Shown here one piece after another: positions 31,971 to 53,000 of a stretch of 64,000 nt of DNA; position 1 is the first letter of the stretch; every line of letters begins with the position of its first letter. The notes under the pieces are model-generated. The model made no database searches and was not told the DNA's origin. It saw only the letters and a program-made list of their open reading frames with translations. Made by a program: the position numbers and the translations under genes. This DNA is from Macrostomum lignano (taxonomy: Eukaryota): NCBI GenBank assembly GCA_002269645.1, contig NIVC01000894.1, positions 124,001 through 188,000 on the forward strand, read 5' to 3'.

Positions 31971-32036
31971 ATGAAGCCAGCAAGCCTGTGTTTGCTGGCA
32001 CTGCTTCTGATGCAGTGCGAGATAAAATTCACTGAG
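31971..32036 (+). CDS. GPCR signal-peptide exon
   Basis: [22 protein letters not shown] then GAG|GTAAG, phase 0; upstream acceptor TTTTTCAG at 31943. Confidence 0.65.
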
Positions 32037-35000
32037 GTAAGTTCGCAGTGGGCCATCGCTAGCACTGACTTTAGCGCCATACCGCTAGCACTGACTTTGG
32101 CGCCATACCGCTAGCACTGACTTTAGCGCCATACCGCTAGCACTGACTTTAGCGCCATACCGCTAGCACTGACTTTGGCGCCATATTGCTAGCACTGACT
32201 TTAGCGCCATATTGCTAGCACTGACTTTGGTGCCATATCGCTGGCACTGAGAAGCAACTGACGGGCTTTTAAATTCCACAGCGGGCACAAATTTTGACAG
32301 TCTTTTCCTTTCCCTTTCTCTTGCATGTTTTTTCTTGAGCCAGCGCACAAAGTACACGACGAGTTTTTTAGAAGGAAGAAACAGGCTCTGACAATGCAAG
32401 AGTTTTAAAGTTTAAAGTTTTAGAAAATTGTATCTAACGGTTTGGATAAGTCCAATGTTTGGCTCAAATATACAGATTCATAACCTACCATCAAAAGCTG
32501 ATTACTGTCGTTCTTAACTTTGATCTTCTTGTCTTCTGTGTCCAAATTTGTGCCCGCTGTCGAATTTAAAAGCCCGTCAGTTGCTTCTGGTTTGTGCCAT
32601 AGACTAGCCAGCATTCTCTGGGCTTTGCTCAACTCTGCATGTCCAAATTAAAAGCCCGCAGTCCAAACTAGAACTTTGTACTTTTCAAGTTTAATCGCAA
32701 AAAAATACAAAAAATTCTTGCGTTACAAACGTTTACGCTTATGCCATAGACAAAATCTGCGGGCAACACACTGACGATTCCTTAGGCCGGTCTTGCCCGC
32801 GAAATCGTGAGACAAAAAGCTATATAACTAACTTATACTGTCCGTCAAAAGTTCCGGAACCCTTGCTACGATGTCTTCTAGCGGACATAATTTCAGTCCG
32901 TTTCAATTGTAACTTGATTAAAATGAAAGCTGCGGATCTCAGCTCCATGATGTGGTCAAGAAAAAGTTTATTCGAAGGAGCGCGTGTGAACAGGCCAGTG
33001 TTATGTACATAAAGGTTAGAGAAAAAAAGTGAGGAAAAGACAAACAAGCAATTGACTCTCCCATGAAAGCTGACTGAAGAAGAATCCATAAGAGCCTGTT
33101 GATTTCAACACAAGTTTTGGCCATAGACTAATGTTAGCCAGGCTGAACACTGCGCGCAAACCGATTCCTTCCCATGTGTGTTTGCTCCATAGACTCAGCA
33201 ACCATAGACAATTGCTTGTTTGTCTTTTCCTCACTTTTTTTCTCTAACCTTTATGTACATAACACTGGCCTGTTCACACGCGCTCCTTCGAATAAACTTT
33301 TTCTTGACCACATCATGGAGCTGAGATCCGCAGCTTTCATTTAAATCAAGTTACAATTGAAACGGACTGAAATTATGTCCGCTAGAAGACATCGTAGCAA
33401 GGGTTCTGGAACTTTTGACGGACAGTATATAGCACGACAGCAACTTTACTGGCTTCAAATGAAATGAAATCCGCATCTGTTTAATGCATTTTGATTAGAA
33501 CCGGTTAGACACATCGTGGAACCGGATTGAACATCAAGTGGGCGGCACTCAAAGTCGGTTTTGGACATGAATAAAATCAGATCTCTGCTGATTAGGATTC
33601 GCAAAAATATGTTTTCCTACAATGCTTCATTACCTGGTACAAGGATTTAAGGGAATCGCTGGGCTGCATCATGTGACTGCCATCCTGATTCTGTTTATCG
33701 ATCACATGCCAAGTAACTCTTGTGATTTGAGCTGTCTCAATGCCTGCTGAGCTCGAGGGCTCTGCTGCTCAAACTGCAAGCATTCAAGTAATCCCAGCTG
33801 TCCTCTGCCCTCCTGCAGACAAAGATCCCTTCTTCTTGCTTTGAATCTGTCAACTTTGATCATCTTTTATAGCTCATCGGTTCATTTATAAAACTGATTG
33901 GTATAGGTTCACCTAACTTCTGTGTACGTCACAGTGTCTGTTTGCCTTGTCTTGGTGTCTTGGTGTCTCAGAGTCCCAGTGTCTCAGAGTCCCAGTGTCT
34001 CAGAGTCCCAGTGTCTCAATGTCTCAGTGTACTAGTGTCTTGGTGTCTCAGTATTTCAGTGTCCTAGTGTCTTGGTGTCTCAGTATCTCAGTGTCCTAGT
34101 GTCTTGGTGTCTCAGTATCTCAGTGTCCTAGTGTCTTGGTGTCTCAGAGTCCAAGTGTCTCAGTGTCTCAGTGTCTTGGTGGCTTGTGTCCCAGTGTCTC
34201 AGAGTCCCAGTGTCTCAGAGTCCCAGTGTCTCAGAGTCCCAGTGTCTCAGAGTCCCAGTGTCTCAGAGTCCCAGTGTCTCAGAGTCCCAGTGTCTCAGAG
34301 TCCCAGTGTCTCAGAGTCCCAGTGTCTCAGAGTCCCAGTGTCTCAGAGTCCCAGTGTCTCAGAGTCCCAGTGTCTCAGAGTCCCAGTGTCTCAGAGTCCC
34401 AGTGTCTCAGAGTCCCAGTGTCTCAGAGTCCCAGTGTCTCAGAGTCCCAGTGTCTCAGAGTCCCAGTGTCTCAGAGTCCCAGTGTCTCAGAGTCCCAGTG
34501 TCTCAGAGTCCCAGTGTCTCAGAGTCCCAGTGTCTCAGAGTCCCAGTGTCTCAGAGTCCCAGTGTCTCAGAGTCCCAGTGTCTCAGAGTCCCAGTGTCTC
34601 AGAGTCCCAGTGTCTCAGAGTCCCAGTGTCTCAGAGTCCCAGTGTCTCAGAGTCCCAGTGTCTCAGAGTCCCAGTGTCTCAGAGTCCCAGTGTCTCAGAG
34701 TCCCAGTGTCTCAGAGTCCCAGTGTCTCAGAGTCCCAGTGTCTCAGAGTCCCAGTGTCTCAGAGTCCCAGTGTCTCAGAGTCCCAGTGTCTCAGAGTCCC
34801 AGTGTCTCAGAGTCCCAGTGTCTCAGAGTCCCAGTGTCTCAGAGTCCCAGTGTCTCAGAGTCCCAGTGTCTCAGAGTCCCAGTGTCTCAGAGTCCCAGTG
34901 TCTCAGAGTCCCAGTGTCTCAGAGTCCCAGTGTCTCAGAGTCCCAGTGTCTCAGAGTCCCAGTGTCTCAGAGTCCCAGTGTCTCAGAGTCCCAGTGTCTC

Positions 35001-50000: not shown

Positions 50001-53000
50001 GGATGGGATCTAGAAGGAAGGAAACGAGAAAGATTGATCTTAAAAACATGGCTGCCTAAATCCAGCATTTTTCTCTAGAAATAATTCCTCATAAAGCATT
50101 CTCTCTGATTAAGATACCAAAATAGAATTCAATTTTCTGAGTTTCCCCACCTGAGCAAATTTCAGGGAGTGAAACGGAACCGACAAAAAGTCAGACTAAA
50201 TAATTCAATGCCTGCAGAGAGCAGACTGGCAGCGGCAAGGACGTGAAACAGATGGCTGCTACTCAACATCAATTAGTTCATTCTGGCAGATTCTAATGTT
50301 TTTAGGCTTCTCCAAGAGTGCTTTAGGAACTGCAGGCTGCGCTTCTGTATAAATTATTGAATTAGAGAAAGCGAACGAAATGAAAAAAAAGATTTTTCAT
50401 GCGTGAAAAATGAAGCGCCGAAAATATGTACTTTTGAGCTGACTTTTGACTTTAAGAATTCGAGTTTCAAATAGCAAAGAGACGATGGTTGATCTCAAAT
50501 ATCATCGCCAGGCAGAATTTCTGTAGGTGGAGGTAGTTCGAGGGGCTGTCGACAGTAAATCCGCAAGATTTTAAGTGGGGTGTAAGGTAGGGGTTTAGGT
50601 AGGTTTCAGGTAGGGTTTCAGGTAGGGTTTTAGATAGGGTTTTAGGTAGGGTGCCAGGTAGGCTTTTAGGTAGGTTTCAGGTAGGGTGCCAGGTAGGCTT
50701 TTAGGTAGGTTTCAGGTAGGTTTCAGGTAGGGTTTTAGGTAGGTTTCAGGTAGGTTTTAGGTAGGGTTTTAGGTAGGGTTTTAGGTAGGGTTTTAGGTAG
50801 GTTTCAGGTAGGGTTTTAGGTAGGGTTTTAGGAGGGTGACAAGATAGAGTGTCAGGGTAGGGTGTCAGGGTAGGGTGTCAGGGTGGGGTGTCAAGGTAGG
50901 GTGTCAGGGTAGGGTGTGAGTTAGGGTGTCATAGTAGGGTGTTAGGGTAGGGTGTCATGGTGGGGTGTCAGGGTAGGGTGTCAGCTAGGGTAGGGCAGTG
51001 TCATGGAGGGTTTCAGAAGATTTCACATTACAAATTGCAACAAGATGAGCTCCAACTGAAACTCCCCAGATCAATGCCTGCCTGTTCGTTCGAATTGTTC
51101 GCGAGCTGTTCGCGAAGATCAAGTCTCAGCCCCGATCCAGCGCCGCGTCCCAGAGCTACAGGTGAGAGAGGACGGAGTCGCCGACACTGACATACGGAAT
51201 TGGCATTAGCAAACCTGCTCTTCTGTCCTGAATTTCAGGAAAATGTGGAAGTCTACTTCTGTGCTGGTTCTGGTGTTCGGGATCTACTACATCATCTTCT
51301 TGCCAATGTCCGTGATGCCGAAGGACCGGCTGGGAGCCACTCTGGACAGCATCAAGCTGTTCTATGAGCACTTCTTCAACTCGTTTCAGGTGAGCAACTG
51401 GGGAGTTTAGAGCAGGAATCTGCAGCTTTGAAAGTGGGATATCTTTGTTGTATGGGATAATTATGGGAATTGGGATTGTGACAAGATTGAATTTTGAAAG
51501 GATGAGACGAGAGCATGATTGAATTATGGTATTATGGGATCATGGTATTTTGAGATTATGACATGATAAGATTATAAAATGATGGGTTGTGACATAATGG
51601 GATTATGACATCATGGGATTATGGCATCGTTGGATTATGACACATTGGGATTACGACATGATGGGATTACGACATGATGGGATTATGACATGATGGGATT
51701 ATGACATAATGGTATTATGACATAATGGGATTATTGCATTATGAGATTATCACATGATTGGATTGACATGAGTGGATTATGAAACTATGGATCATGGCAT
51801 GATGGGATTATTACATGATGTGATTTTACATGATGCTGCTTTACACGATATGGTTATTAAATGACGAGAACTGAACACGCAGGGCTTCTTCGTCTCTCTG
51901 CTGCTCTGCTTCGTGAACTCGGAGGCTCAGCGTGAGCAGAAGCGGCTGCTGCTGCAGACCCGGCCAGGCCGCTGGTTGAAGGCGCGCGGCATCCTGAAGC
52001 CGCCTGCGGATGCCTTCGGGCTGGAGCTGGAGAACCGGCGGAACAACCGGCGGGCGAGGCGGGGTGCAGAGAATGGGGTGAGCAGTTTGAGATTAGATGT
52101 GGAGATGAGATGAGTATACAGTATAAAACTGCACTTGACTGCTTGAGATCTTGAGATGAGACGAGAATAAACCATAGCAGTAAGATTAGATACTCGAAGG
52201 GTTAGATTGGATACGATGAGAATAGATAGGATGAGATTTGATAGCATGAGATTAGATATTGTGAGATAGGATAGCATGAGATTGTATAGGATAAGATTGG
52301 ATAGAATGAGATTGGATAGGATGGGATTGAGTAGGATAAGATTCGATAGGATGAGATTGGATAGCATGAGATTCAATAGGATGAGATTGGATAGCATGAG
52401 ATTCGATAGGATGACATTGGATACGATAATATTGGATAGAATAAGATTGGATAGGATGACATTGGATATTGTGAGATAGGATAGAATGAGATTGGATAGG
52501 ATAAGATTGCATAGAATGAGATTGGATAGGATAGGATTGAGTTGGATAAGATTCGATAGGATGAGATTGGATAGGACGAGATTCGATAGGATGAGATTGG
52601 ATAGCATGAGATTCGATAGGATAAGATAGGATAGAATGAGATTGGATAGCATGAGATTCGATATGATGAGATTGGATAGCATGAGATTGGAAGCATTAGA
52701 TTGGATAGCATGAGATTCGATAGGATAAGATTGCATAGAATGAGATTGGATAGGATAGGATTGAGTAGGATAAGATTCTATAGGATGAGATTGGATAGCA
52801 TGAGATTCGATAGGATAAGATAGGATAGAATGAGATTGGATAGCATGAGATTCGATAGGATGAGATTGGATAGCATGAGATTGGAAGCATTAGATTGGAT
52901 AGCATGAGATTCGATAGGATGAAATTGGATAGCATGAGATTGGAAGCATTAGATTTGGATAGCATGAGATTCGATAGGATGAGATTGGATAGCATGAGAT

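Follow-up and report, generated by a model that had tools for sequence, protein, structure and literature searches.

A 64,000-nucleotide stretch of the genome of the flatworm Macrostomum lignano (contig NIVC01000894.1 of assembly GCA_002269645.1, positions 124,001 to 188,000 of the forward strand; hereafter the window, in whose coordinates all positions are given) holds a single, intact and real gene for a class B1 peptide G-protein-coupled receptor (GPCR), for which a chance origin is excluded. The predicted product carries, in order, a signal peptide, two hormone-binding ectodomains (HRM1 and HRM2) and a full secretin-type seven-transmembrane domain (7TM). Class B1 receptors are major drug targets, and the textbook account of their ligand binding combines one ectodomain with the 7TM. 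Judged from the genomic sequence, we put at about 0.6 the probability that the main product of this gene has HRM1 and HRM2 in tandem, with both exons included in the same mRNA. As modelled, both this receptor and a predicted M. lignano paralog (UniRef A0A1I8IK20, hereafter P0001) combine at least two complete HRMs and one 7tm_2 domain in one polypeptide. What is new here is a second ectodomain in a parathyroid hormone (PTH)-receptor-like B1 GPCR; precedent is known in other B1 subfamilies.

Organization of the receptor gene

On the + strand of the window, ten exons bordered by AG/GT join in frame to form a 603-codon open reading frame (ORF), giving a predicted protein of 603 aa, and all of the introns are of the GT-AG type. 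This model bears out the preliminary description of the locus, which had placed the signal peptide, both HRMs and the 7TM in one frame. Exon 1 (31971-32036) supplies the ATG start and the signal peptide and ends in a phase-0 donor that matches the consensus, GTAAGT; it is the sole convincing signal-peptide exon with a phase-0 donor 5' of either HRM exon. The distal ectodomain, HRM1, is encoded by exon 2 (36630-37046; 139 aa), and the membrane-proximal ectodomain, HRM2, by exon 3 (45216-45563; 116 aa). Both exons encode six cysteines, are phase 0-0 and have AG and GTGAGG borders. The intron between them (37047-45215, 8.2 kb) consists almost throughout of minisatellite arrays. Since both HRM exons are phase 0-0, the frame survives skipping of either, and the three splice models (double-HRM, HRM1-only and HRM2-only) are all in frame.

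The whole 64-kb window was searched by tblastn with eight B1 receptors. The matches comprise the two HRM exons and one set of 7TM exons, colinear on the + strand, and no second 7TM or 7TM remnant was found in the window. Inside the 8.2-kb intron, no credible alternative signal-peptide exon was found between HRM1 and HRM2. With no signal-peptide exon for HRM2 and no second 7TM, one gene is the simplest reading. Candidates for a separate HRM2 signal-peptide exon occur only within repeats, have weak donors and were dropped. The GC content at third codon positions (GC3) is 0.73 and 0.77 in the HRM exons, 0.58-0.89 in the other exons and 0.69-0.72 in the neighbouring genes; the GC content of the introns is 0.26-0.51. 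Among about 15 billion predicted proteins, a word-indexed search and an exhaustive phmmer search returned no near-identical counterpart of the receptor. The public annotation of M. lignano appears to lack the gene, which could now be added.

The 7TM is encoded by exons 4 to 10. Exon 4 (46300-46406) covers the stalk and the first transmembrane helix (TM1), exon 5 (46487-46592) covers TM2 with an RNxIHxNLF-type motif, and exon 6 (47292-47451) covers the cysteine of extracellular loop 1 (ECL1) and TM3. TM4, ECL2 with its Cys-Trp and the start of TM5 lie in exon 7 (49667-49800), followed by TM5 and intracellular loop 3 in exon 8 (51070-51161), TM6, which lacks the usual PxxG proline, and ECL3 in exon 9 (51239-51389), and TM7 with the C-terminal tail in exon 10 (51883-52113), which runs to a TGA stop codon at 52111-52113. 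The only uncertain part of this structure is the 3' end. A possible alternative donor, GTGAGC, follows position 52077 (...AATGGG before GTGAGC), and similarity to P0001 ends at 52077. Since the similarity stops exactly at this donor, the true C-terminus may sit in a further downstream exon, and the TGA ending at 52113 may be bypassed.

Domain and family assignment

In Pfam, the predicted protein matches HRM and 7tm_2 only, besides a sub-threshold match to 7tm_1, and shows no GAIN/GPS or adhesion-type domains. The 7tm_2 match (PF00002; E-value 3.7e-56) covers profile positions 4-250 of 250. When the ectodomains are scored alone, HRM1 (4.7e-15) and HRM2 (3.7e-13) both exceed the gathering score, and the scan thus returns the two HRMs and the 7tm_2 that the preliminary description had expected. 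Its statement that each HRM keeps six cysteines and an Asp/Trp/Pro/Gly/Trp core also agrees with our direct reading of the sequence. The two domains are 28% identical over lengths of 139 and 116 aa.

Structure prediction, which had been proposed as a further check, gives folded cores for both HRMs and a folded 7TM. The AF2 model calculated from a 40-sequence alignment has a mean predicted local distance difference test (pLDDT) score of 79 and is confident for the 7TM as well as for the core of each HRM; the values are 83-92 for HRM1 (residues 71-120) and 83-95 for HRM2. An alignment of two sequences had yielded a pLDDT of 35.6, which is unusable, and the 40 sequences were used instead. In a Foldseek search with the AF2 model, the top matches are all PTH1R, with the best PTH1R complexes at 5.6e-24 and about 35% identity.

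Sequence comparison gives the same neighbours. The nearest solved receptors are PTH1R and PTH2R at about 1e-61 (PTH1R, 8.9e-62), and the secretin receptor follows at 7.5e-51. HRM1 queried alone has PTH2R and PTH1R as its closest solved chains, and HRM2 is best matched by the single HRM that mollusc PTH-receptor-like proteins carry; each HRM is closer to HRMs from other phyla than to the other. In the 7TM, identity is 33-37% to PTH-like receptors versus 25-29% to calcitonin (CT)- and PDF-type receptors, in pairwise scores only. By these comparisons, the predicted receptor is probably a member of the PTH-receptor-like clade of class B1, with PTH1R and PTH2R as its closest characterized relatives.

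Comparison with single-HRM PTH-like receptors

For the 7TM, in sequence and in fold, and also for each HRM, the best matches are PTH1R, PTH2R and the protostome PTH-receptor-like ('secretin receptor-like') GPCRs. They share with the M. lignano receptor the six-cysteine ectodomain, the RNxIHxNLF motif of TM2 and the TM3-ECL2 cysteines. However, all of these carry one HRM, whereas the M. lignano receptor and P0001 carry two. The single-HRM relatives come from bivalve and gastropod molluscs, a nemertean, ticks, a stick insect and a schistosomatid fluke; those outside the flatworms are annotated as 'PTH receptor-like' or 'secretin receptor-like' and are 33-37% identical to the receptor in the 7TM. 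Among the PTH-like receptors within the best 150 matches, a double HRM is found only in the two M. lignano genes. For Schistosoma mansoni, a PTH-receptor-like B1 receptor, Smp_170560, has been reported (PMC3261222).

A second difference from the PTH-like receptors lies in TM6. This helix reads VLVLVFG in the receptor, that is, LVFG where class B1 has PxxG, and the consensus among the 40 relatives is PLFG. P0001 and a receptor from Heterobilharzia (P0002) have the same change as the M. lignano receptor, so it is a feature of the clade and not a sign of decay. In TM7 (51883-51930), the tyrosine of the HETx network is replaced by Leu in the receptor and by Phe in P0001. The substitutions in TM6 and TM7 may represent a flatworm-clade change in the activation switch.

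The paralog P0001 and the age of the HRM duplication

Between P0001 and the receptor, BLASTP gives 43% identity across 90% of the query, and a global alignment gives 51%. It shows the same HRM1-HRM2-7TM order, and Pfam finds two HRMs in it. The two proteins align domain by domain: HRM1 pairs with HRM1 (...SSYSNYSDC in the receptor, ...SSYSNYSAC in P0001), HRM2 pairs with HRM2 (...EGWTNFSDC and ...EGWTNFTAC, respectively), and the linker between the HRMs is partially conserved. Identity between the paralogs is 38% in HRM1, 45% in HRM2 and about 50% in the 7TM, and conservation is strong and patterned, with its peaks in the transmembrane helices. A neighbour-joining (NJ) tree built from HRMs unites the two HRM2 domains with 98% bootstrap support; the two HRM1 domains also lie together but are weakly supported, and the deep nodes are poorly resolved.

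Since HRM1 matches HRM1 and HRM2 matches HRM2 across the paralogs, the HRM duplication is older than the gene duplication, and selection acts on both domains. The divergence of the two HRMs (28% identity) and the 98% grouping of the HRM2 pair accord with the old duplication proposed in the preliminary description, and the domain comparison indicates that it is old and predates the split from P0001. In neither paralog has HRM1 lost its frame, any of its six cysteines or its core residues, although the 7TMs are only about 50% identical. At such a divergence an unconstrained exon would have lost them, and the pattern is a mark of purifying selection. Such conservation indicates that HRM1 is maintained by selection and argues against its being a dead exon or an assembly chimera.

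We considered P0001 as an ortholog from another species and rejected this, since both the window and P0001 are from M. lignano; P0001 is therefore treated as an old paralog. A P0001 query meant to recover additional paralogs from M. lignano, or models based on transcripts, returned only P0001 itself. The search for the same architecture in related species that the preliminary description had advised was rewarded in part: the architecture recurs in this paralog of the same species and in arthropod and teleost models of other subfamilies, and the flatworm Opisthorchis was uninformative. The Opisthorchis locus (L002) encodes a distant B1 receptor whose model begins inside the HRM; the 10 kb upstream contain no second HRM, and the locus does not help in dating the duplication.

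Multi-HRM receptors in other B1 subfamilies

When the double ectodomain was used as the query of an exhaustive search, several predicted receptors came up that have at least two HRMs before one 7tm_2. Calcitonin-receptor-like RefSeq models with two HRMs are found in the damselflies Ischnura elegans (XP_046396658) and Hetaerina. RefSeq models of the same calcitonin-receptor-like type with two HRMs also come from the mayfly Cloeon, the shrimp Penaeus indicus and the scorpion Centruroides, and a GenBank model of this type comes from the sea spider Nymphon. A PDF receptor model from a dolichopodid fly likewise has two HRMs. The Varroa mites are a weaker case, with two HRMs by our own hidden Markov model and one stretch by Pfam. 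In the damselfish Stegastes partitus, a calcitonin-family (CT/CGRP) receptor model (P0007/P0152) has four HRMs. The preliminary description had implied that no described example existed, and these predicted arthropod and teleost B1 receptors, with two to four HRMs before one 7tm_2, speak against this. A pufferfish calcitonin receptor, the subject of work by Nag et al. in 2007, reportedly has multiple hormone-binding domains and would be the published precedent for a B1 receptor with more than one ectodomain. Our literature searches found no open-access description of double-HRM receptors from arthropods or flatworms, and Veenstra (2014) and Cardoso (2014) make no mention of a double domain in arthropod receptors.

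The arthropod calcitonin-receptor-like receptors resemble the M. lignano receptor in having two HRMs before one 7tm_2 and in the age of the duplication. In the NJ tree, distal HRMs form one group (Ischnura, Penaeus and Centruroides) and proximal HRMs another (these three and Nymphon), so the double domain is old in arthropods too. However, the arthropod 7TM is of the calcitonin/PDF type and only 25-29% identical to that of the M. lignano receptor. The Stegastes receptor is alike in carrying several complete HRMs in tandem ahead of a single 7tm_2, but it belongs to the CT/CGRP subfamily and its H2-H4 repeats cluster tightly in the tree, whereas the flatworm HRMs are only 28% identical. The M. 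lignano receptor falls outside the calcitonin/CGRP subfamily, as its best solved relatives are PTH receptors and not CTR or CLR. Because its 7TM is so distant from those of the multi-HRM calcitonin- and PDF-type receptors, an independent origin of the double ectodomain is suggested. In the flatworm gene, a known but under-described architecture seems to have arisen independently.

Two other kinds of multi-HRM protein appeared among the predicted proteins. P0011 and P0014 have an HRM-7TM-HRM-7TM order and probably result from tandem B1 genes being fused during annotation, so multi-HRM models need caution at face value. P0003, P0160-P0166, P0069 and P0037 are predicted to have four to six tandem HRMs without a 7TM, some of them with weak Sushi matches; the P0003 cluster comes from ENA assemblies.

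Proposed binding mode

The two-domain model of class B1 receptors is established: the peptide docks on the ectodomain with its C-terminal helix and activates the 7TM core with its N-terminus. We propose that the M. lignano receptor is laid out as a signal peptide, HRM1, a short helical linker, HRM2 and the 7TM. Against single-HRM PTH-like receptors, HRM2 scores 81 bits versus 66 bits for HRM1. HRM2 also retains the WTNF/Y-x-x-C signature, where HRM1 has YSNY. With its higher score, its better conservation between the paralogs and the retained signature, HRM2 is expected to be the canonical capture domain. As the more orthodox domain, it would hold a peptide hormone by its C-terminal helix, so that the hormone's N-terminus could reach into the 7TM core and trigger a G protein, probably Gs. 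HRM1 would most likely be an accessory distal module that tunes affinity or selectivity, or that binds a second site, ligand or partner; it is expected to be dispensable for activation. We infer the ligand class, the G-protein coupling and the division of labour between HRM1 and HRM2 from sequence comparison.

A bolder proposal combines an independent flatworm origin with HRM1 as a working second binding module, which could bind another peptide, accommodate a long or bivalent ligand, or act as a tethered decoy or an autoinhibitor. We hold this only tentatively and think it doubtful, and the functions suggested in the preliminary description (binding of two peptides, a longer ligand, a decoy role) are likewise speculative. 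If HRM1 were such a module, ligand recognition by this receptor would depart from the two-domain model with one ectodomain; together with the arthropod and teleost cases, tandem ectodomains would then be a recurrent and functionally meaningful B1 design. The recurrence of tandem ectodomains in arthropod and teleost calcitonin-type receptors, on which our searches turned up hardly any open-access literature, indicates that the architecture is under-described rather than unique. An old, conserved second ectodomain in a tractable, transgenic flatworm offers a natural system for the role of an extra hormone-binding domain.

Alternative readings of the locus

Several points weigh against a main product with tandem HRMs. 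No transcript-derived model of the receptor or of P0001 was found in the collections searched. Both HRM exons are symmetric and encode a separate N-terminal helix with Cys1, which makes single-HRM isoforms structurally plausible. The intron between them contains a 99% complementary inverted repeat, a possible assembly artefact. P0001 is a flawed predicted model, with no hydrophobic TM1, a missing TM4 and a 33-aa insertion between TM6 and TM7; in view of these errors, its joining of HRM1 to HRM2 may be the choice of the gene predictor. Finally, the roles suggested for HRM1 and HRM2 are drawn from similarity scores only.

It is possible, though in our estimate rather unlikely, that HRM1 and HRM2 are alternative exons, either mutually exclusive or with HRM1 as an optional cassette, so that the receptor normally has one ectodomain and splicing switches its ligand specificity. 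The phase 0-0 exons, which leave the double, HRM1-only and HRM2-only forms all in frame, suit this reading. So does the fact that either exon alone supplies a complete ectodomain, N-terminal helix and six cysteines included, and the conservation of both HRM exons in the paralog fits it equally. N-terminal alternative splicing is common among B1 receptors, as in PAC1 and CRF2, and we count this in its favour. However, exclusivity is unenforced. The HRM exon lengths are multiples of three, the introns are GT-AG and the exons are 8.2 kb apart, so that frameshift with nonsense-mediated decay, steric hindrance and U2/U12 incompatibility would all fail to prevent double inclusion, which is in frame; the argument takes in these three enforcers and not competing RNA structures. 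In addition, both HRMs are joined in P0001, for a relative the sole existing model, and tandem inclusion is modelled for several arthropod receptors and one fish receptor. With 28% identity and lengths of 139 and 116 aa, the two domains are also unlike typical mutually exclusive pairs.

Two further readings question the unity or the integrity of the gene. HRM1 and exon 1 might form a separate transcription unit, encoding a secreted HRM-only decoy or left over from an upstream tandem paralog that has lost its 7TM, while HRM2 and the 7TM use an undetected first exon. The 8.2 kb between HRM1 and HRM2 would fit such a division, as would the greater likeness of each HRM to those of other phyla, an NJ tree that does not settle the origin of HRM1 and the presence of short HRM-only predicted proteins in databases. 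We nevertheless regard it as improbable, given the strong GTGAGG donor after HRM1, the 178 codons without an in-frame stop, the failure to find a plausible signal-peptide exon between the HRMs, the shared domain order and partly conserved linker of P0001, and a window free of a second 7TM or its remnants. That the locus is not a working gene at all, being either an untranscribed or decaying copy or a chimera misassembled across minisatellite arrays, seems similarly improbable to us. No annotated model or transcript-derived protein was found for it in the collections searched, tandem repeats fill its introns almost wholly, the inverted repeat is of the type seen as a PacBio artefact, and both the PxxG proline of TM6 and the tyrosine of TM7 are lost. 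However, all ten exons are open and have canonical splice sites, their GC3 codon bias is like that of the neighbouring genes, and conservation against P0001 is strong, patterned and highest in the transmembrane helices. The motif losses are common to P0001 and the schistosomatid receptor, and the architecture is repeated in P0001; the UniRef entry for that protein has a source other than the gene calls of this assembly. Co-inclusion of HRM1 and HRM2 in one mRNA is thus the reading that we prefer.

Repeats and neighbouring genes

Between positions 30000 and 54500 of the window, the introns are nearly all made of long minisatellite and microsatellite arrays. The repeat period ranges from 4 to 104 nt and the copy number reaches 236, and the arrays yield very long spurious ORFs in all frames. 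The intron between HRM1 and HRM2 contains a 1,639-nt inverted repeat (37962-39600 and 41056-42694) whose arms are 99% complementary and separated by a 1,455-nt spacer. In the same intron, one 21-nt minisatellite is present in both orientations, in arrays at 37057-37957 versus 39249-40940. The inverted repeat could be a foldback element, a pre-mRNA stem that shortens the intron or a palindrome artefact of long reads.

Downstream of the receptor gene, a single-exon gene for a Nudix hydrolase (PF00293) lies on the - strand at 62026-62526. It is 100% identical to a called gene on contig NIVC01000754.1 of GCA_002269645.1; near that annotated copy (L001) are a gene for prefoldin and another that encodes 404 aa and has no Pfam matches. 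On the other side of the receptor gene, the - strand carries a tandem segmental duplication of about 9 kb, with copies at approximately 5800-15600 and 15000-25200. One copy contains a complete gene for an inositol polyphosphate kinase (PF03770) at 23862-25187, with a 442-aa ORF, and the other contains a truncated version at 14958-15551. Many flanking ORFs are duplicated along with it, for example those at 7275 and 16385 and those at 11504 and 20916.

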